The position numbers and the translations under genes are program-made. Below, one piece after another: positions 10,904-62,029 of a stretch of 64,000 nucleotides of DNA. Each line of letters begins with the position of its first letter. The stretch's first letter is position 1. Source of the DNA: Macrostomum lignano (Eukaryota); contig NIVC01000648.1 of the NCBI GenBank assembly GCA_002269645.1, positions 1 to 64,000 on the forward strand. The letters are read 5' to 3'. Below the pieces are notes generated by a model. It searched no databases. It was not told the origin of the DNA and saw nothing but the letters and a program-made list of their open reading frames with translations.

Positions 10904-13900
10904 ATGTTTTTTTGCATCAATATTCGTGCGTTATCAATACAGGTTGCTAAAAAGGTGCGGCTGTTCCTGATTTCAAATGTCTGGATGCTTTTAACGTAAG
11001 TCTGTGTAAGGAATTAATTAATTAAAGCGATTACATGTAGATAGTGATGGCTTTGTGATGGGAAAATATAACAATAGGAGCTAAAATTATAGGATTGGAC
11101 AGAAAATGGCGTATTGTAAGTTATAATTTTTTATGGTTTTTATTCTATGAAATTTTCTTTATGAGTCATATGTGTCAAAAGAATGTCATACACGCTAGAT
11201 AAAGTAGTCAGAAAAGGTTATGGTCTGCCGGACTTCACTGACTTCACTGGAGGTGTGTGTAAGAGTTCAATGCATTATTTGGCAGCTGCACGAAGAAGCA
11301 CGAAGAAGAGAAAGCCGGCTGACGCACGGGGCCGGAAAAATGAGGTGGGCGCTCTATAGCAAATCAATGGCTCACACTGTGGTTGACCAACAGGCTAATT
11401 CTCAATAAAGTTCTCGATAATTATATATTATCTCATCTGTAGACATCAATTAATTTATTGCAATTTAAATCAATTTATGCATCTGAAGTAGCAATAGTTA
11501 TTGTCACTAAATATTGTTTTACTCAAGAACGACTTAAGTAGAAGGACAGGAAACATCGTTTCCTGGAATTTTTTTGAAGGCCGGTTTTCCGAAAAATACA
11601 CTACGGAGATGTGAAGTTTTCATATAAGGAAGTTTTAATTTCTTCAGCACAACATTTGTTATTGCTTTTGATAGGAGGCAGACCCAACGTTCATATTTTG
11701 AAATGTTGTGCCTTTCTTATTGCTCTATCGATATTAATAAAGCTTTTCGTTTATAAAATCAGGATTCTATGTTCATTTTTTATTCTACGAACATTTCCTG
11801 TACCTAAAAGTCATAAAATGCATTCATTGTACAGCTCGAAATTTTTGGTTTATGAATCTATTTTGTCATTTCTGTTACAAAGATTTGTTAAACAGTCAGC
11901 TAAGAATGATGTTTTAATGGTTTTTAGGCACAAGACACGTGCAGTTGTATATTAGAATAAAAAGTTAATATAGAATTCTAATTTATTTTATTTTTTTCAG
12001 AAAACTGGCCGTCAAAAAATTTCCAACAAACGATGCTTCCCGTCCTACTTAAGTCGTCCTTGGATTTACTGTATTGCTTTGAAAACAATTTTGTACTTTA
12101 ACTACAAACAGTAGCCTAACCTTTGGCTTTCTCTTTTGAATAAGACAGCGCCTAACACAAAGCAGTAATTCCAATATTATAAACTAACATCACATCATGA
12201 GTGACTCATTTTGCATATTCAGATTCTAAATCGTCATGCATTCTAAATTTTATTCAAATTCATTCTTCTGATAAAGTCAATCCAATGAAATTCACTCTTA
12301 AGGATCGAGGCTGCTCACCACTACTGCATCCAGGACAGTATCAAAGCGTTCTCAATGAACGCTGACTCATACCAGCCGGAGACTCTGCTCACCAACCACA
12401 GGGAGGTGAACGGACTCGTCTCATCGCAACGATGCAGCTGGGAGGTGAGGCTGGGCCGCATGACTCAGCCGCTGCAGCTCATGCTGTCGCTTCGGCTCGG
12501 CCACCGCCGACCGGGTGCTGCTGCCAGCGGACCCGGATGTCCGTCTGAGCTGACCGCGGAGCTGCAGGGTGAGCGATTGAGCCACCGGGGACGGTGACAG
12601 CTGCGGCTGTTTAAAATGACTGACAAGCAAGCTCTGCATTGACGCCCTCTGCTTCCCTCATTCAGGATCCGCGTTCGTCAGAAAGTGGACCAACGCGACC
12701 TCGCTGCCAAAAGCGCCTCTGATTGTACCTGTCATGAGAAGGTTGGTGGCGTTTCTGTCCAGTGATCTCGTTTAATATCTCCAATACTAAGTCCAACTCA
12801 TCCGAATCGCTTGAGCAGCTCGCAGCTGCTGACGGTCCGGTTCTCGACGGGCGACTTCGAGACGAGCGCGAGCTGCGGTCGCATCGAGCTGACCATCGCG
12901 GTGGCCAAGAAGGGCTTCTGCGGCAGGCACATGCTGCTGCATCGGGGCCGCTGCCTCTTCATCTCCGACTCGGAGCTGCGGCTGTCGGATCTGAGCGGGA
13001 CTGGAGTTGAGCTGGCTGCGATCTCCGGGAAGGAGCAGCTGTATGAGCTGATGAGGGACAGTGAGTGCTGAGCTGCTGCTCATGCTGGTCATTGCTCATG
13101 GGTACAGTGCTGAGCTGCTGCTCATGCTGGTCATTGCTCATGGATACAGTGCTGAGCTGCTGCTCATGCTGGTCATTGCTCATGAGTACAGGGCTGGGCT
13201 ACTTTACCTCTTTGTTATCACTATCTAATAATATAAGTTCCCACCAATGTATCATTTCACGCATATTTCAGATAAACAGAGACAGCATCGCTACCCATTC
13301 CTTATGCCTCTGGGCCTAAGCAACGTCCCAGTCAGAGTCGGACTGTTCTGCAATGTATCGTCAGGCAGAATGTTTTATCTTGAGAATGCCGCTCGCTCGT
13401 GCTCACCTGCCCTAATCAGCCCCAGAGATGCCCAAGAACTTTATCTTCTGGTTAGGTAAGTGACAACATGGGAAGAGTGCTGCAGTGTGATCGAATCAAT
13501 GCCGTTGAAATTCGCAGAATCATCACAACAGCCCCTTCTGAACCTGCAGGAAGCCAAGACTTTCTGATGTTGCGCAATCATTGGGGTGCGCATCGCTGAC
13601 GTTTGCTGGATTCTCGACTGCTCAACTCAGCTTCTCGAGCTGCAGCTCCTCAGCCAGGTCTCTGCTGAGCTTTCCCGAGAGCCCCTCAAATGAATCTCTT
13701 GCTGCAGGTGCGAACAACTGCCTGAAGAATTTCCTGGACAGAACTTTTAGTCAGCAGTTGCAGGAGAAACAGTTTAGAAATGGCTCTATTGACCTGTTCG
13801 TAGTTATAACCATCGTATGTTTAGTTGCGATGCTCATGGGGATAATAATTAGATATATTTATTACCGTCGGCGAGGTCAATTTAATGCGGAAGGATTCGA

Positions 13901-14030
13901 ACAGCAAAATAGACGGATGAGCACTGGAGAGGTTCCTGCTGCACACTGCGAGATGAAGAGCGAAGGGCACGCGTCTTGTATCGCCAAACACGAATTTGAC
14001 GACTACCAAGTTGAAACAGCTAAAGTCTAA
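10904..14030 (+). CDS. CUB-like + C-type-lectin-like type I membrane protein, copy A (exons 10904-10995 tentative, 12303-12568, 12666-12740, 12819-13060, 13272-13455, 13550-14030)
   Basis: Phase-consistent GT-AG joins. CUB-like C...CSWEV...PKAPLIV..SQLLTVRFSTGD; CTL-like C....GRCLFIS...GVELAAISGKEQL...CASL...SC; TM LFVVITIVCLVAMLMGIIIRYIYY followed by RRR. Exon 1 is a guess and the ends of exons 2-3 are approximate. Confidence 0.75.
13066..13190. repeat. 42-bp minisatellite, 3 units, copy A intron
   Basis: Unit TGCTGAGCTGCTGCTCATGCTGGTCATTGCTCATGGGTACAG directly after the GTGAGT donor. Confidence 0.95.
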
Positions 14031-14189
14031 TTTTAAAGCCGTAAAACAAAGTTATTAGCACGAGGAATGAACTAAACGCTAGGCAAGCCACCCAGACAGT
14101 ACTTTGAATAGTGAGAGATTGGGTCCGTATAAATCGGTGCCAGGATCTATCACAGATGGATAGATTGGCACCATATTGGAGTTTAACCT

Positions 14190-14343
14190 CCATACACGCA
14201 TTTTTTGCGCCCCTAATCTTGATTTTTCTCCCTCTATATGCATTTTTGCGCCCCTAGCTTAAAAATTGGCGCCCTTATACTCGTGCTGGCGCCCCAAACT
14301 TGGACCTCCCTCCCCCCAAAATGAAACTCTAGATCCGCCACTG
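14190..14343 (-). mobile_element. Fragment or end of a MITE-like dispersed repeat
   Basis: Ends in CTAGATCCGCCACTG (reverse complement CAGTGGCGGATCTAG) with repeated GCGCCCC motifs; no second end or TSD found. Confidence 0.35.
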
Positions 14344-14806
14344 GGTAGGGGTATCGTTCTGTCTTTGAAAATAATCCCTAAAAGCTGACACTAAAGTTGT
14401 TGTAGCGCTCTTTGCTCTGTCTCAAGATAATCTACCGTTGACACTAAAATTTCACCAATGCCACCAATTAAGTTGTGCTAGGCGTTGACTTCTCTCTTTA
14501 ACATCCTGAAGACCTGTCACCGAGTTGTCACAGGGTTTTTATTTTTTATGTACTTTTACTAATAGTTCGTGTATAGCTGATAGCTCATTCAGTGTAATCA
14601 GGTCTTACTGGTAAGCCCATGAAGTATTTTCTGGTAGCGTTTGTACTACTAGCATTTACTGGCCTGGAGCGGTTATATGTGGGGCTGTCTACCCTGTTCC
14701 TTTGTTCCTATTTGCTTCTAGCTCTAGGTGATTTACTTCAGACTACTGAGATACGTCTCGTTTCTAAACAGTTCTCAATTCACCCAATTTTGGGTTTTAA
14801 AGGAAA

Positions 14807-16995
14807 TGACATCTGTTTAATTGCCTCGATCACTGAACATGCAATACAAATTTTTATTTCACTGTTTTTAATTTACTCTTTCTCTGGTCGTTTTAATTGC
14901 TAATATTCGTGCTCTTTGTCTTCTTGCGTCTTTGTCTGCACTGTGTAATGACCTAAATAAAACTTTTTTTGTAAACGAATAAACAATGCTTATTCAGACG
15001 TAAAATATACATAAATGTATATCAAGTATATCAGGTATCAGTACATGTATTGCATTTTTTGTCAAAAAGTAACAGTGCAATATCTATCTTAGAGATTTTC
15101 TGTGTACCTTTTTTCACGCATATATTACATATTTTATCCTCTTACGTAGCTTTTTAATGAATGCATGGTATAATGAATGGCATCATTAAAGCATTTTAAA
15201 TTTCACGCTTTTTTCTGTCAAACTGTGAAATAGTGAAAATGGTAAATGCAATATGTCATTTATTATTCAGCAATCCCTTCTGCGAGAGTTTCCCATGCAA
15301 AATATAACAAATGATAAACGCTTGCTTTTTGCATGCTTGTCATGACATCTGTTTAATTGCCTCGATCACTGAACATGCAATAGAAATTTTTATTTTGCTG
15401 TTTTTTTATTAATATTTTTTCTGGTCGTTTTACTCGTAGTTGCTAATATTCGTGCTTTTTGTCTTTTTTGTCTTTGTATGCATTGGGTAATGACCTAAAC
15501 AAAACTTTCTCGTAAACGAATTAAACAATGCTTATTCAGACGTAAAATATACATAAATGTATGCTAAGCAACATTGAAAAGTCGCCATCACAGAAGATTC
15601 GGTCTGTGGTCGCCACTTTTGAGAGTGCAGGTTAAAGTCTCTCAATCTTGCGAGTGACGCAACTCAGGTACGCCGCGGCAGACTCGAGTTGAGGAATGAA
15701 GTGGGGGGAGCGGTGTGCGAAGGTTAAACGGATTAAAGCTACCCCGATCAGTTTTCTCACATCTTTTATTTCAGAATAGTCCAAGAGAAATTGCTCAGTA
15801 GCGAATAGAGTGGCTGTAGGGATCTCCAGATAAGATACAAAGTAGACTACTATAAGTAGCAACATAAAGATGCAAAAAACCTGAACGCTAAAAACTGCAA
15901 ATTGTCACACGATCTATTTTTAAGACCACGAAAGCAACAAGTGACCATCTTTTGCAACATTTAAATTTAGAACTCCGAATATGGTATCGGCGCTTAAAGC
16001 TAATGTATTCCATAGGGGTCAATTTCCAAAGCGCTAAACTGTCACCTACTAAAAATAATCTGTTGTTCAAGAATTTTTCCTATAAATACAAGCCAAAATC
16101 CGAGCTAAAAATCTCAGACTCGGAGCAGCCTCTGTAGATCTTGGAGCTTGCTGGAACAGCTAAGCGAGGCTACATCTCTGAGGAACTACCTACCGTTCGG
16201 TAAGCTCTTGTTCGAGCCTTTGTTATTGAATTGATTTTTTGAGAGCGATTTATTGCCGGCCGTTACTGTTCAGTTGATTTCACTGAGACTATTGAATTTG
16301 AGGCCTCCAATTTTCCTAAGGGATTGGATAGGATCTGCGGACCGATTCCGATACCCTTAGAGGATTATCGAGTTGATTGATTTGGTTATCCTAGATTAAC
16401 CGATAGGAGCACACGACTCCGATTCTGTTAATTCTAGAAGAAGACGCCCCTCTTGGAGGACCTCGTTATTATTACAGAAAGTAGATTTTATTTTAAGGGC
16501 GTATCGTAGATATTGATTACTGAGTTTAAGGCCTGTATTGATTTGCGTTCGAGAAATGCTGCGACGTCGATTTTATTGTTACGCTCTCACCTTCGGCCGA
16601 TTCTAGACTTCAAGAAGACTACCCCGGGAGGAACAGCTCTACGGAGACGAGCTCTACAGACGCGCGCGACAAAGAAGAGGAACCCGCAACAGTAAGTGAT
16701 CACTGACTTTGTTCCCAGGCTTAAGTGTCTGGAAGTGGGAGTTTTCGGGAGACTGATCACCTCCCGAATCAACTCTTCATCAGTACATGTATTGCATTTT
16801 TTGTCAAAAAGTAACAGTGCAATATCTATCTTAGAGATTTGCTGTGTACCTTTTTTCACGCATTTATTATTATTACATATTTTATCCTCTTACGTAGCTT
16901 TTTAATGAATGCATGGCGTAATGAATGGCATGATTAAAGCATTTTAAATTTCACGCCTCTTTTCTGCGAAACTGTAAATTGGTAAAAAATGGTAA
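14807..16995. repeat. Local direct duplication of ~450 bp (14807-15250; second copy split as 15342-15560 and 16783-16995)
   Basis: ATGACATCTGTTTAATTGCCTCGATCACTGAACATGC occurs at ~14807 and ~15342; GTACATGTATTGCATTTTTTGTCAAAAAGTAACAGTGC occurs at ~15041 and ~16783. Confidence 0.85.
15558..16782 (+). mobile_element. LTR-like insert (~1.2 kb) related to the solo LTR at 7741-8771
   Basis: Starts TGTA and ends CATCA; shares TATAAATACAAG...CTCAGA...GGAGCAGC...GAGGA...CGGTAAGC in the same order as the - strand of 7741-8771. No TSD found. Confidence 0.45.
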
Positions 16996-18359
16996 ATTTC
17001 TGATACGGCAACAGAGTGAAAGCAATTTTAATATTTCACTATTTCATACAAGTATCACTCAGCAAGTGCTGTACATCTTGTGAATTGTAGACTGGTGGAG
17101 CCTTTTTAGGCAACCTGTTCAATTTCCGCTAGAACTGGCTGTACTCGTAGATAATGCAAGAAGTGAAAACACAATAAAATAGAAGAAAGAATTTTCGGCA
17201 TGTTTGAAATTTGTCATCAAACTGTGAGAGTGAAGAAGTCAGCTGTGTCAAGTTATTTTTTTAATTACGCCTAAGAACAGAATAAGGAACAGGACTGAAA
17301 TGGACACCGACCCGCGGTTGCAGCGAGGAGACGGAGGAGACGGCCCATTCCGCTAGCACCTGGTGGCCAAAAACTTCCACAGAAGTGATGTCGTTAAGGC
17401 GTAACCTGTCGGTCTCGCCTGCAGTGCCGTTCTCCTCACCAATAAGAGCTTCATGGCTCTTGTCAGCTCTCTTCACTTCTCTCCTCTCTACTCTCAGCTC
17501 TCTCCCACTCTCCCCTCTCCCGTCTAAGTAGCACTGTGCTGAGATCAGATCATTTGACAGCATCTCTGATTGGCTAGCTAATTCGCTGAACAATAACTGC
17601 ATCTGAAAGTTCGAATAACAGTTTCGCATTGAGCATCACGCACGCACAGGGCATCGAACTCATAGATACAGAAGAGTCTCAATAACAATAACTAAAGTTG
17701 TATAAGTATTAAATTAGCTGAATTAGATGTTTAAGGCAGAAACAGATTCTTCGAGTTTACCATATGTATGATTTTATTGTCTCGAGATAAAAAATTGGAG
17801 CTACAGTAGTATGAGACAAACCTGCTTGTATGTTCGCCTGTCCTCATTGACAATTATCATCGAGTTGTTGCATGTTAATCTTCTATTTCGAAATTGGAAT
17901 ATAGTGGCAGCAGACTACTCATTAGTAGGAACACTAAGCATTGACTAATGTAGGGATAATCTATTGATCTATCAATCTGAGAAGAGCGATCTGTAGGTTC
18001 TATGCATTCAATACTACTATAGCAATTGAATGAAATTGCAGATCAAAATCATTAATTGGCGTTCACCACTATAGCAAGCCATAGCAATGCCGTACTATTG
18101 TCGTACGGAGGCCACAATAGTTTCAATCGTTGTACTCCTTAACCCAGAACTGCATTTGCATACCAGACTGGATACTGGTTACCAGTGCCCACTTACTCGA
18201 TAAAGTCGAGTGCAAGCTACCCATATTCTACTCGATTTGCATAACTGTGACATCTGAAACTACATGGAGGAGTGACATATAGGTTTTTATTTTTTCAAGC
18301 GTTATAGAGTCCACTAGCCAAGCTTGATGGATTGCTTTGGCTGAAACATCCGCCACGCA

Positions 18360-21066
18360 ATGACCTGGAGCTGGCTGCTTCTCACAGCTCCAGCGTTTGT
18401 CAGCCTCTTCATCATCAACTGCGAGGCTGCTCACCACTACTGCATCCAGGACAGCATCAAAGCGTTCTCAATGAACGCTGACTCAGACCAGCCTGAGACT
18501 CTGCTCACCAACCACAGGGAGGTGAACGGACTCGTCTCATCGCAGCGATGCAGCTGGGAGGTGAGTCTGGGCCGCATGACTCAGCCGCTGCAGCTCATGC
18601 TGTCGCTTCGTCTCGGCCACCGTCGACCAAGTGCTGCTGCCAGTGGACCCGGATGTCCGTCTGAGCTGACCGCGGAGCTGAAGGGTGAGTTATAGGGGCT
18701 CCGCAGCATTGATGGCAGCGACACGGAAGCAATCAGTATCAAATTAGGAATTAGGAGGCGGGCCTGCGAGAATTGCCACCTCAACTGAATAGCTTCTGTA
18801 GGGTGCCAGCTGCATAGGCACAAGTGAAGAGGCTACGATAGTCAGTGAACCATTCTGACGAACCTTCTTGTTTTTCTTCTTTGCCGTAGCCGTCATTTCT
18901 TCCTTCTTCTTGCCTTGAATACAGATATCTCCCTTCTGCCACGTCTGATGTCAGTAATATTCGAGCTTTGTCTGTTAAACGATCTCCTCCACATGTTCTG
19001 GTTCCTATCCCTATACCTCCTCCATTTTTCTCGGAAACCAGACATTTGCCTTTTTCTCTTTTCATGAAATCCTTTGCACTCTTATGGAGCATTTCATTTC
19101 AAATGCTTTGAATGTCTCCACACTTCTCTTCCCCAGAGTTCAGCTCTCGCAACCACAGAGCAGTGTTACTCAAATGACCGCCTTTGTTAAGTTCATCAAG
19201 CATATCATTGAGCTGGTTGCGACGCCAATTCGAATTCTGATCGCTTCCTCCGATGTCCCATTCTCCGTGATGATTGATCACAAATATTAAGATTTCTTCA
19301 CGTGTTTTTTGACGACGCTTAGTAGATACTCATTCAGAAAAATCCACGTATCTCCGTAGGAGACAGCTGAGAGCTTCATTTTGCAGACTCTCGCAGACGA
19401 GACAAGGAGTGCAGTGCAATATCGATTGATCGTATATCGATAGTTAGAAAACTTTTCACAGAAGCAATATTTTTGCAAAGCAAAATCAATGAATTTTAAA
19501 GCACGTAATTAAAGAAATTGACTTCATATCGACTATTCACCGCGTAAAGATACGGAGTTGCGCAAGACCTGGAGAAATGGAATGAATCTTCCAAAGGCTC
19601 CATTGATCGTGTCAGTAATGCACAAGTGAGTTTCATAGCGTGGTTTTTCAATGCACTCCAGAGCTCGTAAGGATGTCTACATGCACAAACTCTTCAACAG
19701 CTCGCAGCTGCTGACGGTCCGGTTCTCGACGGGCGACTCCGTGCCGAGCGCGAGCTGCGGTCGCATCGAGCTGACCATCGCGGTGGCCAAGAAGGGCTTC
19801 TGCGGCAGGCACATGCTGCTGCATCGGGGCCGCTGCCTCTTCATCTCCGACTCGGAGCTGCGGCTGTCGGATCTGAGCGGGACTGGAGTTGAGCTGGCTG
19901 CGATCTCCGGGACGGAGCAGCTGGATGAGCTGATGAGGGACAGTGAGTGCTGAGCTGCTGCTCATGCTGGTCATTGCTCATGGGTACAGTGCTGAGCTGC
20001 TGCTCATGCTGGTCATTGCTCATGGGTACAGTGCTGAGCTGCTGCTCATGCTGGTCATTGCTCATGGGTACAGTGCTGAGCTGCTGCTCATGCTGGTCAT
20101 TGCTCATGGGTACAGTGCTGAGCTGCTGCTATTCTCAATTTCAGACGAACGCAGGGCCAAACAATACCCATTTCTCAAGCCGCTGAACTTGAGCAAACAA
20201 GCAAGAGTGGGAGTTGTTCGCTGTTCCGCCTCAAAGACTTTTTCTGTCCATTTCAACTCCACCAGCGGCGTGTGCTCACGGGAACGTTTCAACTCAACTG
20301 CCGTTTCAGATCTGGCAGTTAAAGGGTGAGCAGTTTTTTTCTCTATTTATTGATATAACAGTAAATAATTAACCTAGTCATAGGTTGAACACTCGCTCAC
20401 TGACTTGAAACGATCAAGCAGAATGATAAATGATTACATGTACATCCCTGCTTTTCACTGCCTGTAGAAATCTCACTGCCGATACTCGGTGCACAGCCTT
20501 GCAAGCTGATCCTGAAGGCAGAGCCGCGCTGCACAGCTGCTCATGCAGAGCGAAGATGCTTTCACTGCTCAGCTTCAGCGAGACTCCAGTCGGTTCAGAG
20601 TCGGGCAAAGTGAGAACAAAAAACTGTTGGCTACATGTACATCACTTACGAGTATGTGGGGCAAACTCTATCCACAGAACTCCACCGATCTCCCGGACAA
20701 CTGGCAAATCTGGACAGAAGTTAATCGTCGCTTTCCTGATCGCGCTGTACATAACTTTTGCTATCAGTAGTGTGTGCATGTGCCACTCAAGAATCCGCAA
20801 GGTTGGTTTACAGTACTTGTTTTGTGTCCATAATTATGCTTTTATTTATATTCTTCTAGCTCAGCTTGCAAAGACAGATATTGACAAGTCTTTATTTGAA
20901 TCTTCCGTTTCAGATGATCCGATCTGGACTGAAACAGGTGCAGAGGGTGGGTCAAGGCTCTGACTTTGCTGCTGCTGCTGCTGCTGCTAAAAACGAGCCC
21001 CAGTTGCATACTCATATTTTTATAGAAAGGCTGTTTACTCCGTACAGCCCTCTTTCTGAGGTGTAA
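18360..21066 (+). CDS. CUB-like + CTL-like type I membrane protein, copy B (exons 18360-18684, 19550-19625, 19701-19942, 20145-20325, 20468-20801, 20865-20937, 21026-21066)
   Basis: Signal peptide MTWSWLLLTAPAFVSLFIINCEA; all joins phase-consistent; TM LIVAFLIALYITFAISSVCMC. The tail ends ...PIWTETERLFTPYSPLSEV* if the 20938-21025 intron is used, otherwise it stops at 20963. Confidence 0.8.
19948..20130. repeat. 42-bp minisatellite, ~4.4 units, copy B intron
   Basis: Same unit as 13066-13190; fills almost the whole intron 19943-20144. Confidence 0.95.
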
Positions 21067-22567
21067 CTTGAGTACGCTTCGTATCTTTTCATATTTTTAT
21101 AGAGAGGCTGTTTACTCCGTACAGCCCTCTTTCTGAGGTGTAACTTGAGTACGCTTCGTATCTTTTCATATTTTTATAGAAAGGCTGTTTACTCCGTACA
21201 GCCCTCTTTCTGAGGTGTAACTTGAGTACGCTTCGTATCTTTTCATATTTTTATAGAAAGGCTGTTTACTCCGCACAGCCCTCTTTCTGAGGTGTAACTT
21301 GAGTACGCTTCGTATCTTTTCATATTTTTATAGAAAGGCTGTTTACTCCGTACAGCCCTCTTTCTGAGGTGTAACTTGAGTACGCTTCGTATCTTTTCAT
21401 ATTTTTATAGAAAGGCTGTTTACTCCGTACAGCCCTCTTTCTGAGGTGTAACTTGAGTACGCTTCGTATCTTTTCATATTTTTATAGAAAGGCTGTTTAC
21501 TCCGTACAGCCCTCTTTCTGAGGTGTAACTTGAGTACGCTTCGTATCTTTTCATATTTTTATAGAAAGGCTGTTTACTCCGCACAGCCCTCTTTCTGAGG
21601 TGTAACTTGAGTACGCTTCGTATCTTTTCATATTTTTATAGAAAGGCTGTTTACTCCGTACAGCCCTCTTTCTGAGGTGTAACTTGAGTACGCTTCGTAT
21701 CTTTTCATATTTTTATAGAAAGGCTGTTTACTCCGTACAGCCCTCTTTCTGAGGTGTAACTTGAGTACGCTTCGTATCTTTTCATATTTTTATAGAAAGA
21801 CTGTTTACTCCGCACAGCCCTCTTTCTGAGGTGTAACTTTTGTACGCTTCGTATCTTTTCATATTTTTATAGAAAGACTGTTTACTCCGCACAGCCCTCT
21901 TTCTGAGGTGTAACTTGTGTACGCTTCGTATCTTTTCATATTTTTATAGAAAGGCTGTTTGCACTGCACAGCCCTCTTTCTGAGGTGTAACTTGAGTACG
22001 CTTCGTATCTTTTCATATTTTTATAGAAAGGCTGTTTGCACTGCACAGCCCTCTTTCTGAGGTGTAACTTTTGTACCCCTTGTATTTTTGCCTATGTTTT
22101 ACAGAACGCTGTTTACTCCGTACAGCCCTCTTTCTGAGGTGTAACTTTTGTACCCCTTGTATTTTTGCCTATGTTTTACAGAACGCTGTTTACTCCGTAC
22201 AGCCCTCTTTCTGAGGTGTAACTTTTGTACCCCTTGTATTTTTGCCTATGTTTTACAGAACGCTGTTTACTCCGTACAGCCCTCTTTCTGAGGTGTAACT
22301 TTTGTACCCCTTGTATTTTTGCCTATGTTTTACAGAACGCTGTTTACTCCGTACAGCCCTCTTTCTGAGGTGTAACTTTTGTACCCCTTGTATTTTTGCC
22401 TATGTTTTACAGAACGCTGTTTACTCCGTACAGCCCTCTTTCTGAGGTGTAACTTTTGTACCCCTTGTATTTTTGCCTATGTTTTACAGAACGCTGTTTA
22501 CTCCGTACAGCCCTCTTTCTGAGGTGTAACTTGTGTACGCTTTGTATGTTTTGCGTATTTTTTACAG
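21010..22567 (+). repeat. 77-bp tandem array (20 units), each an acceptor plus a copy of the terminal exon of gene B
   Basis: Acceptor G at 21025, 21102, 21179 and so on to 22026 (14 units, TTTTTATAG|AAAGGCTGTTTACTCCGTACAGCCCTCTTTCTGAGGTGTAA), then six variant units from 22104 to 22489 (TTTTACAG|AACGCTG). Confidence 0.9.
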
Positions 22568-23204
22568 AATTTACTTTATAACCAAGGATAGGATTTTCGC
22601 ACTTTGGACAAACTACTGATATCATTGCTAGTTGAGTTCTTGTGCTAAGTTGTGACGTTGACAGTTCCTTTGTCTCCCCAGTTCTTCAGCTGGTATTCGC
22701 TGGGAATATTTAATGTGTATTTTGGTTTGTTCAATGGGTTGTACTTTTATGTTTGCTGAAGGTGGTTGGCAATACTTTATTTAACTTTTTAAATTTTGTG
22801 GCTTGGGAGGTGATGTCTCTTGGGAGCTCGGCTGTTGTAGTCTTGCAGAATGGAATCTGTGTTACAGCGGAAGACGCTATGAGAAACTTGTCCTGCATTT
22901 GAAATTCGAATTGATATCGTTGAATTTTCATGCTGTCTGAATCGGTAAATGTGACGATAGAAGGCTGGACCGGCCCTGGTACTCAAGGAGATTTTGTCGA
23001 CAATATTACTCGTGTAATTAAGTAGTTACCGGTGGACGTATAGAGAAAGCGTTCAATAATTTTAGCTTAAACTAGCAATTCGCCCTCCCCGTTGGGGGCC
23101 AACAAAAAGAAGAATAAATATTTTTGAATAAAATGCATGTCGCTTCTGAACTGTCAGTCTTAACATCTCAGCAATTCCACTGTAAGTCTTGACATCGCAG
23201 TGAT

Positions 23205-23643
23205 TCCCCCCTAAGCCTTGACATCTCATCAATTCCCCCCTAAGCCTTGACATCTCAGCAATTCCCCCCTAAGCCTTGACATCTCAGCAATTCCCCCTAA
23301 GCCTTGACATCGCATCAATTCCCCCTAAGCCTTGACATCTCATCAATTCCCCCCTAAGCCTTGACATCGCATCAATTCCCCCCCCCCCTAAGCCTTGACA
23401 TCTCATCAATTCCCCCCTAAGCCTTGACATCTTATCAATTCCCCCTAAGCCTTGACATCTCATCAATTCCCCCTAAGCCTTGACATCGCATCAATTCCCC
23501 CCCCTAAGCCTTGACATCTCATCAATTCCCCATAAGCCTTGACATCTCATCAATTCCCCATAAGCCTTGACATCGCAGCAATTCCCCCTAAGCCTTGACA
23601 TCTCAGCAATTCCCCCTAAGCTCTGACATCGCAGCAATTCCCA
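23205..23643. repeat. ~29-bp minisatellite, about 15 copies
   Basis: Unit (C)nTAAGCCTTGACATCTCATCAATT with a variable C run. Confidence 0.95.
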
Positions 23644-25008
23644 AATTAATCGTTTATGTTCGACATAATGTTTCTTTTATTTTTGAAATTATGCTTCTTT
23701 CATGTTGTCATCTTTTGATAATTGTACCGCTAAATTAAACTGCACTTATGGATGAATTTCATGTAAATATTTTATAGTACAGTGAGAGTCATCTGCTACG
23801 AAAAGTTGTGCCACATTTTTTTCACGTTTCACGCTGTGTAAGTCAGTGATTCAACCCAGCATCAGTAGCTGATTGAAAGCGGAAGTGCACCATAGAGGGC
23901 TGCGCTAATGACTCACTTGTACTCACATGGAATAGTGACTCCAAATACGTAGAACAGGGAGCTGGTCTGTGCAATCAGCGCGATGTTGATTTTTACCTGT
24001 CTTAAGGCCGTCCCCTGTCCCCCTCTCCTTAGGCTCAACCGAAGGTATCTTTTCTCACCACTTTTATCGCTCAGGCAGTGAAAACGCTGAGCACTTTGTC
24101 TGCCACTACCGGGTGGTCTTCACCAGGCCAGACTCACTCAAGTCTGGCCAAACCCGGTTCTCTCCGATGTTCGCAGGCCCAAGAAAATACCGCTGCTCAC
24201 CCGGTACCTCTAGGATGCAATGACCCCCCCCCCCTGAGCGACATCACTTCGATGGTAGCTATCTGTCGTCAGGGGCTCGCGAAACGGGTGTTCTAGATTA
24301 TTCTGCAGCTGGTGCCCCCTACAGCTAAGACAAGCCAAGCCAAGTCCACCTGTCTACAAATCCCCACACATGACCAACTCTGTGCAGTGCATGCAGTGTA
24401 TGACATAGCCTACGACACTGTCAAGTGCATTCGTTTGTTTGTAGAAAGACGGTTTTTGGTACTGTCATAGGCTACACTCTCCTGAAAGCACTACTCAGAA
24501 AATTTACACTGTACACTGTAGCTAGCAATGGACTGACTAAAGATGGAAACAATAACGTGCTCTGCTAGCAGGCATTACAGCGCCCGCGCAAAACAGTTGA
24601 TTGTCTCTCTGCCAGACACCTCCGACAGAAGACGGAAAGGCAGCGCAGTGGGCATTATCTGAAAAGTGCGCGCATCAGGTAGGGATTCAGAGCTGTATGT
24701 ATCGCATTTCTTGGAATATTTCAGCCGACATCAGATTGGTGTTTGAATTCTGAGGGTGTAATTTTCTATCGGCACTGGCCAAAACCCTGCGGAATTCAAA
24801 TTAGCACAAGTCTTTAGAGTCTCAGATTTTGTTGTTATAATACACATTTGATTGCTTTTTAACTTTTAAAAATAGCTTTATAGTTGTCAACTGTCATTTT
24901 AATTAGTCTGCAAATATACGAGCTATAGCATTAGCTGATTAGTTGATTAGGTAATTAGTTAATTAGTTTTGCAATTTTTCAGTCGCATTTTATTAAAATC
25001 TGCTTCAG

Positions 25009-28000
25009 ATGTGCAGCAAACAGCTGCTTGCATTTCTCCTGCTCATCGCGGTATCTCAGACTCCAATTCGAGGGTAAGTAAGCTAAGCACTTGGCTCTCA
25101 ATGTAATGTGAGCAATACGACCAGTGAGGATTGCATTATTATGGTGTGGGATTGGCAAAAATTGCTTTGGAAATGGGGAGGCACTTGTATCGAACTGCTA
25201 GCGTTATTTTTCTAATGTATAAAGTATGATGTAAAAAAAATAAAAGAAAAGAAGGCCTTCATAGCTAATGGAATTTGAAGTTTGTTCTTTTTTAATTATT
25301 AACACTGGCTTCCTTGACAGCCAACCAGATTTGCTGCTTAGATCTGATCCATAAAGAACGTGCCATACATGTTATCCACCTTCATGCTTGCGCACTAACT
25401 GTTCCCCATTCAGGACACTCGCTGAGCGGCACCAGTGCCACAGCTCAGGACACCTGCTGCAACTGAGGGACGGTGAGACGGAAACCCTGGACACACTCAA
25501 CAGGGATCAGAGCGAGCTGACTGCATCGCAGACCTGCCTATGGGAAGTGAAACCGCCGGCCAACCTGATCGAGCCGGGCAATTTCATCTTGAATATCGCT
25601 CGGAAAAGAGGCGGGTCTGAGGCGGCGATGCCCGATGGCAATCCACCGAGCTGCGATTGGAGCCTCACGGTGGAATTGACAGGCAAGCTGGATTCAAGGT
25701 CATGGCGGAGGTCAAAAGTGAATATTATGAGTATTAATAGCTCAGTTATGGATTGCACTTTGCAGGATCCAGCTTCAGCAAGGCGTGGCACGACCGGGAC
25801 CTGCCGCCGAAGGCACCCTTGGTAGTCCCTGTGACCAACAGGTATGGTTCTGATTTTGAATTTAAAAAGCAGCTGGTGGCCTCTTGACTAGTTTATGTAA
25901 CATTGCGCTGACTGACTGTGTTGGTCCGGTGTGTTTCTGTCCTGCAGCTCGCAGCTGCTGACGGTCCGGTTCTCGACGGGCGACTTCAAGCCGAGCGCAA
26001 GCTGCGGTCGCATCGAGCTGACCATCGCGGTGGCCAAGAAGGGCTTCTGCGGCAGGCACATGCTGCTGCATCGGGGCCGCTGCCTCTTCATCTCCGACTC
26101 GGAGCTGCGGCTGTCGGATCTGAGCGGGACTGGAGTTGAGCTGGCTGCGATCTCCGGGACGGAGCAGCTGCATGAGCTGATGAGGGACAGTGAGTGCTGA
26201 GCTGCTGCTCATGCCGGTCATTGCTCATGGGTACAGTGCTGAGCTGCTGCTCATTCTGGTCATTGCTCAAGTGTACAGTTTATAACCGCCGTTATTTCAG
26301 ATGATGACAGAACGAACGCGCACCCATTCATCAGACCCTTAAACCTGACCAGACCTGTGAGAGTGGCGGTGTTTCGTTGCAACAAAATCATTCAATGGAC
26401 GCAGGTTGCACAGACAGTGAGCTCCAGTTTGTGCGTGATCGGGAATTTCAGCACGACTGGGGCTGCTCAGGAGTCCTTTACTCGACGGTTCGTTGCTTTT
26501 CGTTCCATAGACGTACAGGGCTATGATTTTAAGTTCACGCTAAAGACTGTATCTTGAGTCCTTGGCTACCTGAGCAATTCCCATTGAGTCCTTGATTACC
26601 TGAGCGATTCCCATTGAGTCCTTGGCTACCTGAGCGATTCCCATTGAGTCCTTGGCTACCTGAGCGATTCCCATTGAGTCCTTGGCTACCTGAGCGATTC
26701 CCATTGAGTCCTTGGCTACCTGAGCGATTCCCATTGAGTCCTTGATTACCTGAGCGATTCCCATTGAGTCCTTGGCTACCTGAGCGATTCCCAATGAGTC
26801 CTCGATTACCTGAGCGATTCCCATTGAGTCCTTGGCTACCACCTGAGCGATTCCCATTGAGTCCTTGGCTACCTGAGCGATTCCCAATGAGTCCTTGATT
26901 ACCTGAGCGATTCCCATTGAGTCCTTGGCTACCTGAGCGATTCCCATTGAGTCCTTGGCTACCTGAGCGATTCCCATTGAGTCCTTGATTACCTGAGCGA
27001 TTCCCATTGAGTCCTTGGCTACCTGAGCGATTCCCAATGAGTCCTCGATTACCTGAGCGATTCCCATTGAGTCCTTGGCTACCACCTGAGCGATTCCCAT
27101 TGAGTCCTTGGCTACCTGAGCGATTCCCAATGAGTCCTTGATTACCTGAGCGATTCCCATTGAGTCCTTGGCTACCTGAGCGATTCCCAATGAGTCCTCG
27201 ATTACCTGAGCGATTCCCATTGAGTCCTTGGCTACCACCTGAGCGATTCCCATTGAGTCCTTGGCTACCTGAGCGATTCCCAATGAGTCCTTGGCTACCT
27301 GAGCGATTCCCATTGAGTCCTTGGCTACCTGAGCGATTCCCATTGAGTCCTTGGCTACCTGAGCGATTCCCAATGAGTCCTTGGCTACCTGAGCGATTCC
27401 CATTGAGTCCTTGGCTACCTGAGCGATTCCTATTGAGTCCTTGGCTACCTGAGCGATTCCTATTGAGTCCTTGGCTACCTGAGCGATTCCCATTGAGTCC
27501 TTGGCTACCTGAGCGATTCCTATTGAGTCCTTGGCTACCTGAGCGATTCCCATTGAGTCCTTGGCTACCTGAGTGATTCCCATTGAGTCCTTGGCTACCT
27601 GAGCGATTCCCATTGAGTCCTTGGCTACCTGAGCGATTCCCAATGAGTCCTTGGCTACCTGAGCGATTCCCATTGAGTCCTTGGCTACCTGAGCGATTCC
27701 CAATGAGTCCTTGGCTACCTGAGCGATTCCCATTGAGTCCTTGGCTACCTGAGCGATTCCTATTGAGTCCTTGGCTACCTGAGCGATTCCCATTGAGTCC
27801 TTGGCTACCTGAGTGATTCCCATTGAGTCCTTGGCTACCTGAGCGATTCCCAATGAGTCCTTGGTTACCTGAGCGATTCCCAATGAGTCCTTGGCTACCT
27901 GAGCGATTCCTATTGAGTCCTTGGCTACCTGAGCGATTCCTGGCTGTTCTTGGCAGTCCTTGGCTGTTTAAGAAAATGTAAACACCATATTACCTAATTA

Positions 28001-28434
28001 ATCATTCCAGGAACCAGTCCATTTCATCACAGGTAGACTGCGCATCAATCAGTGCTGAACCTGACGATTCGGAGAAACTAAAATTGTCATTCATTGACTG
28101 CGACCAGCCGCAGCACCTGTTGCTGAGCTTCCTAATTGAGCCAATCAATCAAGATTTGCAACACAACTCCAACTGCTTGGAATCCACAATAACCGGCTGT
28201 AAAGATTTGAGCATGCATGTGATTTTTAAAGAATCAACTGATAAAGAAACGGACAGTTCAGATAAAACTGATCTGATAGCTTTATTTGTGTCTGTGACAG
28301 CCTCACTGCTAGTGTCGGCCGTGATTCTGGTAGTTGCTGTTAAATTTTTTATTTTTAAGCGACAAGGACCTCGTCGCAAATCTAGAAGGTCCAAACCCTT
28401 TGATTCATTGTCTGGAATCCCTTTAAGATCTTAG
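25009..28434 (+). CDS. CUB-like + CTL-like type I membrane protein, copy C (exons 25009-25073, 25414-25682, 25766-25841, 25948-26189, 26301-26487, 28011-28434)
   Basis: Signal peptide MCSKQLLAFLLLIAVSQTPIRG; CLWEV and SCDWSLTVELT CUB-like motifs; the shared 242-nt exon; TM LIALFVSVTASLLVSAVILVVAVKFFIF. Requires a GC donor at 25683. Confidence 0.75.
26195..26275. repeat. 42-bp minisatellite, 2 units, copy C intron
   Basis: Same unit and same intron position as in copies A, B and D. Confidence 0.9.
26554..27940. repeat. 30-bp minisatellite, about 46 copies, in intron 5 of copy C
   Basis: Unit GAGTCCTTGGCTACCTGAGCGATTCCCATT; source of the spurious (MGIAQVAKDS)n ORF. Confidence 0.97.
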
Positions 28435-28989
28435 TTGTTGAAATTAAATCACACTATGTTTGTTCTGGAAAGAGACTATCGGTGCCATATGAAAAAGTAT
28501 GGTGAGTACCTGACTTACCTGAGTTACCTGACTGCTAAAACTGACGTCATCACAATTTATTTGTGATGACGTCAGTTGTGATGACGTCATACAATTTTGT
28601 TTTGCGTATTTTTTAGAACGGCTGTTCACTCCGTCAGCCCTCTGTCTGAAGTGTAACTTTTGTACGCTTTGTATTTTTTGCGTGCTAACAAGTTCATTAC
28701 TGCAAGCATTATTAATGAACGCTACCCGCCAGATCTAGAACTGCGCCCAACCTAAGTACCGTGTTTTCCCATAAGATCATAACCTCCGAAACCACCCCAA
28801 CCTGATTCGATTGTTTGTCTTCTATCAGTTTTATGTGATTATTATACTACTAACATCCATGTTTAAGAGAAAATACAAATAATTGAATAATCGGCCAGTT
28901 CGTCATCGATCACAATCAAGCTTCTACGTGTTCGTCACTAATTTGCGTACATGTAGCAGCCCGTTAGCACGCGAACTCAATTACGTCAG

Positions 28990-30504
28990 ATCAAATATTC
29001 GTCACAAAGTGGAATGTGTGTTACAGCAGAAGACGCTACGGAGGTGCACCCTTGGTAGTCCCTGTGACCAACAGGTATTATTCTGATTTTGCATTTAAAA
29101 GCAGCTGGTGGCCTCTTGACTAGTTTATGTAACATTGCCTGACTGACTGTGTTGGTCCGATGTGTTTCTGTCCTGCAGCTCGCAGCTGCTGACGGTCCGG
29201 TTCTCGACGGGCGACTTCGAGCCGAGCGCGAGCTGCGGTCGTATCGAGCTGACCATCGCGGTGGCCAAGAAGGGCTTCTGCGGCAGGCACATGCTGCTGC
29301 ATCGGGGCCGCTGCCTCTTCATCTCCGACTCGGAGCTGCGGCTGTCGGATCTGAGCGGAACTGGAGTTGAGCTGGCTGCGATCTCCGGGACGGAGCAGCT
29401 GGATGAGCTGATGAGGGACAGTGAGTGCTGAGCTGCTGCTCATGCTGGTCATTGCTCATGGGTACAGTGCTGAGCTGCTGCTCATGCTGGTCATTGCTCA
29501 TGGGTACAGTACTGAGCTGCTGCTCATGCTGGTCATTGCTCATGGGTACAGTGCTGAGCTGCTGCTCATGCTGGTCATTGCTCATGGGTACAGTGCTGAA
29601 AAAATATGTAACAGAGAGAGTGAGTAAAAACGCAAATCGCAAAGCACACGGTAACCCAAAAGTTCTCATGCTGTTTTGTGCTCATACAGATATTTTGTGC
29701 TCATACTGATGTTTTGTGCTCATACTGATGTTTTGTGCTCATACTGATGTTTTGTGCTCATACTGATGTTTTGTGTTCATACTGACGCATTGCAGATGCT
29801 CTTGAAGATGCCACTGGATTCGAGCAGATGCCTGAGATTCGGAGTTTTTCGCTGCTCTGATTCGGTTCAGCCTTATGTTTGGGACTCAAACTGCAAACGA
29901 ATTTCTGCAGCGCAGTTATATTTACGATTTGAAAACCCGAGTCAGGAATCAAGGTAAGGCTCGGAAATCTCGAGGTTACATTTACACACGATAAATTTAC
30001 GTGTATGCCTTCGACAGTATACTGCTTTCATCTATGTTGCCAATTTGCTCTGACTTCAGATCTGAGCCGTCAACCCTCCAGTGCGGCTCTCTGAAGATTG
30101 GTAGCAGTAAAACTCTGGAGCTCGCGTTTTCGGATTGTAGCACCCCTATGAGATCCCTGCTGAGCTTTGCCAACCCGGCACCTGTCAGTATGGGCTCAAA
30201 GGAATTGAACCAGTGCATTTTAACATTGACCAAGTTCTGCCGAAATGCATCAACAATAAGTGCTTCAAATTCTAAAGAGTCAGCCAGCAACAGTCTTCTT
30301 TTTGAAGTACCCATGTCGATAATTACAATTCTGATTATTTTGTCATTCTTTTTTGTTGTATTTTGTACTCGTCGGAGGCGTTTAACTCGGAGCCAATTCA
30401 ACAATATTTTAAATTACGTTTGGTGCGGAAGATGCAGACAGTTGAATCCACGCGCATCTATTAATTCCGTCGCTGCCATATTTGACAGGAGCAGGCGGAA
30501 GTGA
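28990..30504 (+). CDS. CUB/CTL-like membrane protein, copy D, 5'-incomplete or pseudogenised (exons 28990-29074, 29179-29420, 29796-29953, 30060-30504)
   Basis: Contains the shared 242-nt exon, the CGSL...LAFSDC...RSLLSF motif and TM IITILIILSFFFVVFC followed by RRRR. No signal-peptide or CUB exon found upstream, and the phases of 29420 (phase 1) and 29796 (phase 0) do not match. Confidence 0.55.
29426..29785. repeat. 42-bp minisatellite (4 units, 29426-29598) followed by a 19-bp repeat (~29670-29785)
   Basis: 42-bp unit as in the other copies; 19-bp unit CTCATACTGATGTTTTGTG. Confidence 0.9.
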
Positions 30505-50442: not shown

Positions 50443-53400
50443 CCTACCTACCTATCTATCTACCTACCTATCTATCTACCTACCTACCTATCTATCTACC
50501 TACCTATCTATCTACCTACCTATCTATCTACCTACCTATCTACCTACCTATCTATCTACCTATATATCTATCTATCTACCTACCTATCTATCTACCTACC
50601 TATCTACCTACCTATCTATCTATCTATTCTGCACCTCACCTCAGCCAGCTGAGCCAGTCGCTGGACGGATTCCTCGGACAAGTCGACATCTTCGACAACG
50701 GACCAGGCGCCTTTCGGCTGGAATCGGACGGGAAAGCTGAACACCCGACCGGGCGGGATGCCGTACCAGCCTGCGAGATTTCGGTAAGAGGGGTCGGGTT
50801 GTGTGTTTAGACACAGGTCAGATCGCTGGCTTAGTAGTTGACTAAGTTAAGTTGAGTTGGCCGCGATTAGTACGTTGCAGTCAATAGGCTCAGACAGTCT
50901 CACCCTCGGACACAACTCCTAACGAGTAGATCTCGTTGCCAGAGCCGCCCAGCCACCAGTTGCGTACCGTGTCAGCTGTGGCCTGAGCAGTGCTCAGCGC
51001 AGCCGATCGTGGCCCAGTTCCGCCTAGCAACAGATTGTTATCCTGTCGCTGACGCATTGTTTTAGGAAACTCCTGATTGAGCCATTTCTTATCCCAAACT
51101 GTGTCCAGCACAGGCTGGTTGTAGCTGTCCGGTCCCGTGATTGACCCGTCGTAGTAGTGCACCCGGGCCCGGCTCAGGTCCACCAGGTTCTCCCCGGCCG
51201 GGTCGCCCCAAACTATCAGGTCAACCACGCTGGACGGCAGCACCTGGATAGGGTAACAAGCGATGGAGACTAAATGTATAGGTCACTCAGTTCATCGGAC
51301 AGTAGGTCACTCAGTTTATCGGACAGTAGGTCACTCAGTTTATCGGACAGTAGGTCACTCAGTTTATCGGACAGTAGGTCACTCAGTTTATCGGACAGTA
51401 GGTCACTCAGTTTATCGGACAGTAGGTCACTCAGTTCATCGGACAGTAGGTCACTCAGTTTATCGGACAGTAGGTCACTCAGTTTATCGGACAGTAGGTC
51501 ACTCAGTTTATCGGACAGTAGGTCACTCAGTTTATCGGACAGTAGGTCACTCAGTTTATCGGACAGTAGGTCACTCAGTTTATCGGACAGTAGGTCACTC
51601 AGTTTATCGGACAGTAAGTCACTCCGTTCATCAGACAGAAAATAGATCACTCCATTAATCAGAATCAAAAGGAAATTCTCCGTGCAGTTTTTGAGACTGT
51701 AGGCCCCCCTTTAATAATTAGAACAAAGGGCATTCATCCTAAAAGCCCAAAATCTACACTGACCTTCATATGTCCCGCCAGTGCGCCCTTGGCCTGCCGC
51801 TCCAGCAACCGACCGGCAGCGGCCACATTTCTGGCCGGCAAGCGCGGACAGGCGTCCAGCAGCACCCGGGCGCCGAAGTTGACAGGCCCGCGGCCGGCAA
51901 GCAGCACCTTCAGCCGGCGACTGCATTCGGCCGCGTTCAACCAGTCGGCGTAGCGTCGATAAACTGCAGCGGCGGCCGACAGCCAGTCGACACGGGCGGC
52001 CAGCTCGGCGGCCGAGGCGGCTGCATCGGCGTCCGATTTGTCCGGCTTCGTTGGCGAGTCGCCTTCGGCCGGTGAAGCCTCCGTCGCCGTCGCCGCCTTT
52101 TTGTCTTCCTCGCCGTCCGTTGCCGACTCCTGCGGCGACGGCGGCTTCAAGAGGACGTCGTCAAGCAGCAGCAGGATGTCTGCGGCGGCTGCGGCCTCCT
52201 GGAAGTTGGCGGTGGCCCGGATGCTGCGCACCAGCGGATGGGCCAAGTCGAAGGCCTCCATCACCAGGCCCTGATGAAGGGTTCGGGAGCAGCAATGCGT
52301 AACATAATTATCTTGCAAATAATTAGACAGCATTTTCAAGGCATAAACTGAGGATCTGGGAGGCAAGCCCAGCAACTGAGGATCTGGGAGGGTGGCCCAG
52401 CAACTGAGGATCTGGCAGGCTGGCCCAGCAACTGAGGATCTGGGAGGCTGGCCCAGCAACTGAGGATCTGGCAGGCTGGCCCAGCAACTGAGGATCTGGG
52501 AGGCTGGCCCAGCAACTGAGGATCTGGCAGGCTGGCCCAGCAACTGAGGATCTGGGAGGCTGGCCCAGCAACTGAGGATCTGGGAGGATGACGGTGACCC
52601 AGCCAGTAGGTAAACAGACAGGCGCACGGACCTCCAGCTCCTCCGCATCAGCTACATCGCAGTCGAACAGTGTGAAAGCCAGCTCAGTGCTCCGTCCGAA
52701 CACGGAGCCGTCCATGAGCAGCGGCAGCAGCTGGTAGGCGGTGGGGCTCGCCGAGGCCGTCACTAGCACCTGCAGTGGCCTAGATAGCGAGCGCAGGTGA
52801 GCCTCTTCGGCGTCCAGCTCCGATTTGTAGCGCGAGTTGTCCTTGGCAACCGCGAGCATCTCCGGGCTCAACATCGATGATTCGGCATCGTAGTAGGCTG
52901 CGAATTGGCGCATGCGCAGGGAAGGGGGCAGTAGATGAAGGTGAAATGGAGTAGTAGACAGGTGAAATGAGGTAGTAGACAGGTGAAATGAGGTAGTAGA
53001 CAGGTGAAATGAGGTAGTAGACAGGTGAAATAGGGATAGTAGACACAGGTGAAAAAGGGTTAGTTGACACAGATGAAACAGGGGTAGTAGACACAGATGA
53101 AACAGGGGTAGTAGACACAGATGAAACAGGGGTAGTAGACACAGATGAAACAGGGGTAGTAGACACAGGTGAAACAGGGGTAGTAGACACAGATGAAACA
53201 GGGGTAGTAGACACAGATGAAACAGGGGTAGTAGACACAGATGAAACAGGGGTAGTAGACACAGGTGAAACAGGGGTAGTAGACACAGGTGAAGCAGGGG
53301 TAGTAGACACGGATGAAACAGGTTAGTAAACTATTTAACACCAAGGCAGTTTCCGCTCACCCTTAGCAAACTCTTGAAACTCATTAGCGCCGCCAATTAG

Positions 53401-60379: not shown

Positions 60380-62029
<1,650 letters not shown>

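Follow-up and report, generated by a model that had tools for sequence, protein, structure and literature searches.

A 77-bp minisatellite behind a membrane-protein gene of Macrostomum lignano may have grown from the 3' end of the gene's last coding exon

When a tandem array carries a splice-site-like AG, an open frame and a stop codon in unit after unit, is it a set of working exons or a row of passive copies? This question is raised by a 77-bp minisatellite in Macrostomum lignano, located on contig NIVC01000648.1 of assembly GCA_002269645.1, of which we analysed positions 1 to 64,000 of the forward strand (64,000 nucleotides, hereafter the window). The array sits behind gene B, which comes second in a tandem row of four + strand paralogues (A-D). 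The initial annotation of this DNA read the unit as a 20-fold amplified terminal exon with its own 3' splice site, and offered either a bank of alternative last exons or an inert, repetitive 3' untranslated region (3' UTR) seeded from the last exon. We lean towards a form of the latter, in which the array is a variable number tandem repeat (VNTR) that would have arisen from the 3' end of the last coding exon of gene B, seeded across the stop codon, and that now lies as passive copies in the 3' UTR. As judged from sequence, the copies are most likely not switchable alternative last exons, and we are rather confident that one or another of the readings that treat them as non-functional passengers is correct.

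The array itself was readily recovered with Tandem Repeats Finder (TRF), which reported a period of 77, 97% matches, no indels and a score of 2423.

21012-22562, + strand: 77-bp minisatellite of 20.1 copies, with proximal units to 22067, distal units from 22068 to 22529 and then a partial last spacer.

A 36-nt core pattern of the unit found 18 matches with at most three mismatches, against 0 expected. The units are in head-to-tail tandem and fall within the 10-100 bp range, which makes the array a minisatellite or VNTR by definition. A register cut after each TAA gave 20 in-register copies of ...AG^AAAGGCTG...GTGTAA (here and below a caret marks a splice junction or a junction resembling one), all exactly 77 nt long and ending in GTGTAA, with stops at 21064 + 77n. 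The 14 proximal units have the consensus ...CATATTTTTATAG^AAAGGCTGTTTACTCCGTACAGCCCTCTTTCTGAGGTGTAA and share the acceptor-like junction TTTTTATAG^A(A/G)AG(G/A)CTG. Three tails are encoded ahead of the stop: ERLFTPYSPLSEV with Tyr in eight units (1-3, 5-7, 9 and 10), ERLFTPHSPLSEV with His (...TPH...) in four (4, 8, 11 and 12) and ERLFALHSPLSEV with Ala-Leu-His (...ALH...) in two (13 and 14). All three variants had been reported previously, with unit positions that were off by 1 nt, the exon starts being 21257, 21565, 21950 and 22027. The distal units (15-20) are mutually identical, differ from the proximal type in the spacer and read TTTTACAG^AACGCTG, with one base fewer after the AG that is compensated by one additional spacer base. 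The earlier count of 14 units that keep acceptor, frame and stop and six that are 1 nt shorter was thereby reproduced. We also considered a long repeat-encoded protein and rejected it, since every forward frame stops in each unit and minus-strand open reading frames (ORFs) within the array are at most 53 amino acids long.

The presence of AG, frame and stop in 14 units, together with three peptide variants, speaks for a working bank of alternative terminal exons, in which a phase-1 donor (at 20938 or elsewhere) is joined to different acceptors to yield the Tyr, His and Ala-Leu-His tails and thereby switches a signalling tail of YxxL/PDZ type. In its favour is also the predicted tail itself, which would follow a transmembrane (TM) helix and the basic stretch HSRIRK: the C-terminal S-E-V fits the class I PDZ-binding pattern (X-S/T-X-hydrophobic-COOH) and YSPL fits YxxPhi. 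The proposed likeness of TPYSPL to an immunoreceptor tyrosine-based inhibitory or switch motif (ITIM or ITSM) did not hold in the strict sense, as the consensuses are [S/I/V/L]xYxx[I/V/L] and TxYxx[V/I], respectively, and the motif combines the T of ITSM at -2 with the L of ITIM at +3 without satisfying either; only the looser YxxPhi remains. Retention of the sites is, moreover, poor evidence for function. The 14 proximal units differ at just 8 distinct sites, and the chance that none of these strikes the five critical bases (AG and stop) is 0.57, so that the intact acceptor, frame and stop carry no weight and are what recent amplification at 97% identity predicts. An identical peptide is encoded by 8 of the 14 units, a phase-1 donor would be joined out of frame to 6 of the 20, and the six variable sites within the exon part divide into three synonymous and three non-synonymous substitutions. 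The variants also occur in blocks (the six identical distal units, a Y-Y-Y-H pattern twice, and the pairs 11-12 and 13-14), an arrangement expected from unequal exchange. We therefore consider the exon bank very improbable, and give no greater credence to its evolutionary version, in which splicing does reach the repeat AGs, the proportions of Tyr, His and Ala-Leu-His tails depend on how long the array is and which units it contains, and the terminal exons are VNTR-encoded and rapidly evolving.

What the unit represents depends on how gene B ends. The paralogues A-D share one layout: they have a signal-peptide exon, exon 3 is near-invariant and leads into an intronic minisatellite of 42 bp, exon 4 is divergent, and the TM exon carries a short basic tail. 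The product of gene B is predicted to be a type-I single-pass membrane protein of a tandemly duplicated family specific to M. lignano. The gene B model matched four M. lignano proteins in a protein search. Two protein models of the cluster, P0001 and P0002, carry the UniRef name 'CUB domain-containing'. Pfam searches with two gene B models and the TM exons of A and C gave nothing significant, the first B model finding no family at E <= 1, and the refined 436-residue model left the CUB model unmatched and hit just a sub-threshold Frag1 at E <= 10. By eye, the gene B sequence contains a C-x-W-E-V ... LTVRFSTGD pattern. For comparison we used two homeologous loci, L001 and L002, on contigs of the same assembly, whose unique flanks align to the window at 92-98%. 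The features of gene B are as follows.

18361-18686, + strand: exon 1, with the ATG, a signal-peptide-like N-terminus, the start of the CUB-like region and a phase-1 donor G^GTGAGT (sequence; tblastn of P0001 and P0002 matches 18471-18686).
19550-19625, + strand: exon 2 (DTELRKTWRNGMNLPKAPLIVSVMH), donor AA^GTGAGT (sequence; P0001 aligns, and the phases suit exons 1 and 3).
19701-19942, + strand: exon 3, with 96-99% identity across A-D and a donor, A^GTGAGT, that merges into the 42-bp minisatellite at 19946-20130 (sequence comparison).
20145-20325, + strand: exon 4 (ERRAKQYPF...DLAVK), donor GG^GTGAGC (100% match to residues 1-60 of P0002).
20468-20801, + strand: exon 5, encoding the putative transmembrane helix LIVAFLIALYITFAISSVCMC and then HSRIRK, phase-0 donor AAG^GTTGGT (99% match to P0001); an alternative phase-0 donor, AAA^GTGAGA at 20609/20610, is the one used in P0002.
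20914-21066, + strand: proposed last coding exon, contiguous, encoding MIRSGLKQVQRVGQGSDFAAAAAAAKNEPQLHTHIFIERLFTPYSPLSEV and the stop, acceptor ccgtttcag^ATG; the first repeat unit supplies its last 55 nt (ORF 20860-21063; acceptor and frame of P0002; kept in L001).
20938-21025, + strand: 88-nt intron of the initial annotation, donor CAG^GTGCAG, acceptor TTTTTATAG^, containing a (GCT)7 run; coding in the model favoured here (P0002 reads through the equivalent).

Two acceptors follow the TM exon and both are kept in the homeologous copy. The first, at 20864/20865 (ctcag^CTT), leads into the frame ...LAKTDIDKSLFESSVSDDPIWTET assumed by the initial annotation. The second, at 20913/20914 (ccgtttcag^ATG), is compatible with the phase-0 TM donor at 20801/20802 and leads into MIRSGLKQVQRVGQGSDFAAAAAAAKNEPQLHTHIFIERLFTPYSPLSEV, which runs uninterrupted into the first repeat unit and ends at its TAA. 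The frame that ends in SPLSEV is open from 20860 to this TAA at 21064, and the start of the array at 21012 lies inside it, so that the first repeat element overlaps the end of what would be the coding sequence. The 77-nt unit accordingly contains what are likely the last 13 codons of gene B, together with the stop and the 36 nt that follow it. Since the same C-terminus is reached without an intron, a separate mini-exon is not needed, and in the contiguous frame the apparent acceptor TTTTTATAG^AA simply reads as the codons ATT TTT ATA GAA. P0002, a transcript-derived protein model from a homeologous copy, joins ...SESGK to MFRSGPIMVQRAGQDSDFAAAAAAK..., which corresponds to the acceptor at 20913/20914 and its frame.

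All the strings on which the proposed intron was based are present: ACAG^GTGCAG with its GT at 20938-20939, the AG at 21024-21025, an exon start at 21026 and a TGA at 20961-20963. A splice used just once, which would remove the 88-nt intron between an exon at 20865-20937 and the AG of the first unit (21025), with the other 19 AGs silent as in the human F7 gene discussed below, is thus conceivable; its phases agree (phase-0 TM donor, acceptor 20864/20865, phase-1 donor 20938, then AA AGG), its GT and AG occur in both the window and L001, and the acceptor has a good T-tract. The donor is a difficulty, since GTGCAG lacks the +4A and +5G and is the weakest in the gene, all annotation-supported donors being GTGAG(T/C/A). 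P0002 also reads through the equivalent position, an outcome that the initial annotation had named beforehand as speaking against its donor. In gene E, a related gene on L001, the two GTs in the distal part of the TM-exon tail (T^GTACAT and T^GTACTT) would create a TAA when joined to AA, and the open upstream frames of B and E would have to be coincidental. We regard a single splice as improbable, and the objections to its donor apply to the exon bank as well.

The open frames speak for translation of the first unit. Upstream of it the SPLSEV frame is open for 68 codons in B and 86 codons in E, in upstream sequences that are unrelated to each other, and stop-to-stop ORFs that reach these lengths make up 4.2% and 2.5%, respectively, in the two sequences. 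A net difference of 6 nt immediately 5' of the AG between B and E is in-frame, as is a 12-nt indel in the GCT run between B and its L001 counterpart, B'. Both B-versus-C substitutions inside SPLSEV are synonymous. These observations, and the fact that P0002, the sole transcript-derived model of the exon, takes the acceptor at 20913/20914, count against the most serious alternative, which is that the unit is never translated: B would use 20864/20865 and end in ...DDPIWTETGAEGGSRL at the stop at 20961-20963, or elsewhere, the 13-codon ORF would be a coincidence, and the array would be purely non-coding 3' UTR or intergenic sequence.

Several points nevertheless weigh against our preferred model and in part support this alternative. 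Support for the contiguous exon comes from open frames, phases and a single annotated homeologue, P0002, which is a B-C chimera that exits the exon after the Ala run and never gets to the repeat unit; since P0001 is likewise a chimera, of A, B and C of the window locus, annotation of the cluster is unreliable. The acceptor ctcag^CTT at 20864/20865 is equally conserved and phase-compatible, and in the window as in L001 its frame stays open as far as 20960. Substitutions between these two loci number one synonymous to three non-synonymous in each candidate frame and thus leave the frames unseparated. Among 5.8 billion clusters, no protein shares three 5-residue words with a 59-residue query that contains the tail, and the tail has therefore never been annotated as translated; exact look-up of the 50-residue last-exon ORF, P0001 and P0002 in assemblies returned none on record. 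The annotated protein of gene C ends in the TM exon, and the unit behind it is frameshifted, lacks an ORF upstream and is located past an ATTAAA. Finally, conservation of the unit is undiminished beyond the stop codon, and at 84-87% nucleotide identity between B and C it contrasts with about 30% amino acid identity for the neighbouring exons, so that gene conversion or constraint has to be invoked. Taken with the evidence from the frames, we judge it unlikely, though deserving of serious consideration, that the unit is never translated.

Whichever way the gene ends, the related loci bear on the fate of the copies. A profile search with nhmmer over the window, L001 and L002 found the 77-bp unit behind B-, C- and E-type genes only, and no decayed units behind the paralogues A and D.

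Window 28597-28683, + strand: gene C homologue of the unit, about 1.2 copies, 84-87% identical to B units, with a 1-nt deletion (ccgtcagcc) and an SPLSEV-frame ORF of only 23 codons; the ATTAAA it lies past follows the annotated stop of C.
L001, about 17543-17646: gene C' unit, about 1.2 copies, with features as in gene C.
L001, 6243-6408: gene B' array, 2.1 copies, one proximal-type and one distal-type unit.
L001, 11712-12372: gene E array, 8.6 copies, with TATAG changed to TACATAAAG (TACAT) and the AG lost in 5 of about 9 units.
Window 21012-22562, + strand: gene B array, 20.1 copies, 14 proximal and 6 distal units.

Copy number thus ranges from about 1.2 to 20.1 among homeologous and paralogous loci, which is a comparison between loci and not between alleles of different individuals. 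Gene E has a TM exon and upstream sequence unrelated to B, and L002 diverges from the window right after the 42-bp minisatellite, making it uninformative on the 77-bp array. A side feature is found right upstream of the gene C unit, namely a 15-bp direct repeat with the palindrome TGACGTCA (CRE-like) at 28561-28589, for which Rfam gave sub-threshold matches to microRNA families only. For the exon bank, a B' array of merely 2.1 units and the amplification in E of units without an AG are further obstacles. The copies are under no selection: five E units have lost the AG, six B units are frame-shifted, and the variant sites do not avoid the AG or the stop by more than chance allows.

The passive VNTR that we favour can be given a simple history. 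The ancestral 77-nt segment would have comprised the 13 final codons with their stop and 36 nt of the 3' UTR. The last exon would be contiguous (20914-21066), and of the repeat units only the first would be translated. In the single-copy architecture similar T-rich motifs stand on either side of the segment, TATTTTTATAG before it and TATTTTTTACAG 77 nt further on, and motifs at this distance would be a classic substrate for an initial slippage duplication. Slippage or unequal exchange between them may have produced the first duplication, a state that would persist in the 2.1 units of B', and further unequal exchange may then have amplified blocks into the 14 proximal and six identical distal units. 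The end of the proximal spacer resembles the flank that precedes the array and the end of the distal spacer the flank that follows it, which accounts for the two unit types without selection.

The expansion would have taken place inside the transcript, as suggested by the sequence downstream.

22563-23158, + strand: unique 3' flank, common to B' and E at about 90-93% identity, ending in a conserved double AATAAA (sequence comparison).

No AATAAA or ATTAAA occurs between 20900 and 23113. The double AATAAA (AAGAATAAATATTTTTGAATAAAATG), at 23113-23118 and 23127-23132, lies about 550 nt beyond the array and is kept at the same relative position in B' (L001 6946-6965) and E (L001 12929-12948), which makes it the probable poly(A) signal. 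Because it is conserved and none precedes it, the likeliest 3' UTR extends from 21067 to about 23150 with the array inside it. The 19 other copies would then lie between the stop at 21064 and the AATAAA pair at 23113/23127, a 3' UTR of about 0.7 kb would have grown to about 2.1 kb through them, and their AG sites would be silent pseudo-acceptors at most. The pair directly precedes another minisatellite, of 28/29 bp, at 23159-23642 of the window.

A location in the 3' UTR would also suit a cis-acting RNA element, such as a GGCUGU/ACAGCC hairpin, whose amplification tunes the stability or localisation of the mRNA. The 77-nt block is the only alignable 3' sequence common to B, C and E, four of the six variable sites of the exon part lie in the hairpin loop, and the proximal unit folds with z = -2.4. 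On the other hand, the hairpin is broken in the major E units and in the first unit of E, folds of single units range from z = -0.2 to -2.4 with inconsistent structure, and copy number is unconstrained. The lower value for three units (z = -4.7) arises because the repeats pair with each other. An Rfam search over 18000-30000 gave sub-threshold chance matches only, and none within the array. We assign such an element hardly any probability, and the single-unit folds equally offer the exon bank no evident selector or docking-type structure. With these alternatives considered, we retain the passive VNTR as the reading for which the inert 3' UTR of the initial annotation was the nearest precedent.

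The closest described case is intron 7 (IVS7) of human F7, where the first element of a 37-bp VNTR spans the boundary of exon 7 and intron 7, so that the donor is followed by identical, silent pseudo-donors (Borensztajn et al. 2006, PMC1557585). The repeated F7 sites are functional in principle yet silent, and the array is polymorphic in copy number (PMC1557585). The likeness to gene B is that the first element spans an exon boundary and a signal is repeated in identical context. The differences are that F7 repeats a 5' splice site at an internal junction, whereas at the 3' end of gene B the repeated signals would be the 13 last codons, their stop and an AG that resembles an acceptor, and that silence of the copies was shown in F7 and is what we propose for gene B.

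VNTRs in 3' UTRs are also familiar, for example the 40-bp VNTR of human SLC6A3/DAT1. As in these, the gene B array has tandem units of tens of bp between the stop and the probable poly(A) signal, and copy number alters the length of the UTR. The gene B unit differs in that it includes the stop and coding sequence, which makes each copy resemble a mini-ORF, and in that variation is seen between homeologous or paralogous loci rather than between individuals.

Arrays of genuine exons include the Dscam1 exon clusters and the alternative 3' exon arrays of Drosophila lola and mod(mdg4). Tandem exon duplications can give rise to mutually exclusive or alternative exons (Ivanov & Pervouchine 2022, PMC9013439). 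Head-to-tail exon copies with flanking splice signals are the mode in which the exon bank would have to work. In such arrays frame and splice sites are kept in every copy, divergence is driven by selection, number and order are conserved, also across species, and there is support from transcripts. In contrast, the gene B copies are near-identical, one third of them are frame-shifted (6 of 20 units, 1 nt short), loss of the AG is tolerated in the sister array (TATAG to TACAT in 5 of about 9 E units) and copy number is unstable (2.1 units in B' versus 20.1 in B).

The gene family contains a second VNTR seeded at an exon edge, a further point in favour of the passive reading. The 42-bp minisatellite of the intron begins within the exon 3 donor in each of A-D (GGGACA^GTGAGTGCTGAG...; arrays at 13064-13200, 19946-20130, 26193-26279 and 29424-29599), and each 42-bp unit consists of a diverged copy of the exon end with the pseudo-donor CA^GTGCTG, a situation directly analogous to IVS7 of human F7. 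Among A-D, identity is 96-99% over exon 3 and the array next to it (12810-13200, 19692-20082, 25944-26279 and 29175-29560), versus about 30% amino acid identity for exons 4 and 5, which hints at gene conversion or a hotspot of recombination. The homeologous loci also contain chimeric genes: gene E on L001 combines C-like exons 1-3 with its own 3' half and a B-like array, and in L002 a B-like 5' half gives way to unrelated sequence. The chimeric protein models, which map to 12355-28221 of the window, combine exons 1-2 of A, 3-5 of B and 4-5 of C (P0001) and exons 4-6 of B with 1-3 of C (P0002), and may either stem from polycistronic precursor transcripts or be artefacts of multi-mapping between paralogues that are nearly identical. 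The ATG of gene C directly follows an acceptor, ctgcttcag^ATG (25008/25009), as expected of a trans-splice site. In M. lignano, 39% of genes are trans-spliced and 7% are in polycistronic precursor transcripts (PMC5730564).

Minisatellites are abundant in the window, where 32 arrays, whose periods span 8-168 bp, occupy 23% of the sequence, exceeding the 15% published for simple and tandem repeats in the whole genome (PMC5730564). This repeat-rich background likewise speaks for the passive VNTR. One 28-bp unit (AACTGAGGATCTGGGAGGCTGGCCCAGC) forms two separate arrays, at 52346-52587 and 60743-61589, which are about 8 kb apart and 92-96% identical to each other. A 30-bp minisatellite of 46 copies in an intron of gene C (26554-27940) gives rise to spurious minus-strand open frames of 475-484 amino acids, because its period is a multiple of three.

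These findings call for no new biological mechanism, and only proven use of the repeat acceptors would make them a new way of diversifying a signalling tail. Arrays of this kind create exon look-alikes that mislead readers and gene predictors alike, which is a reason for caution in annotating a genome with 15% simple and tandem repeats. The gene B array is also a natural test bed for the choice of 3' splice sites, the mirror image of the F7 system. If the reading we favour is true, the locus would record a clean, datable birth of a minisatellite at an exon edge, with stages of 1, 2, 9 and 20 copies preserved within a single gene family.

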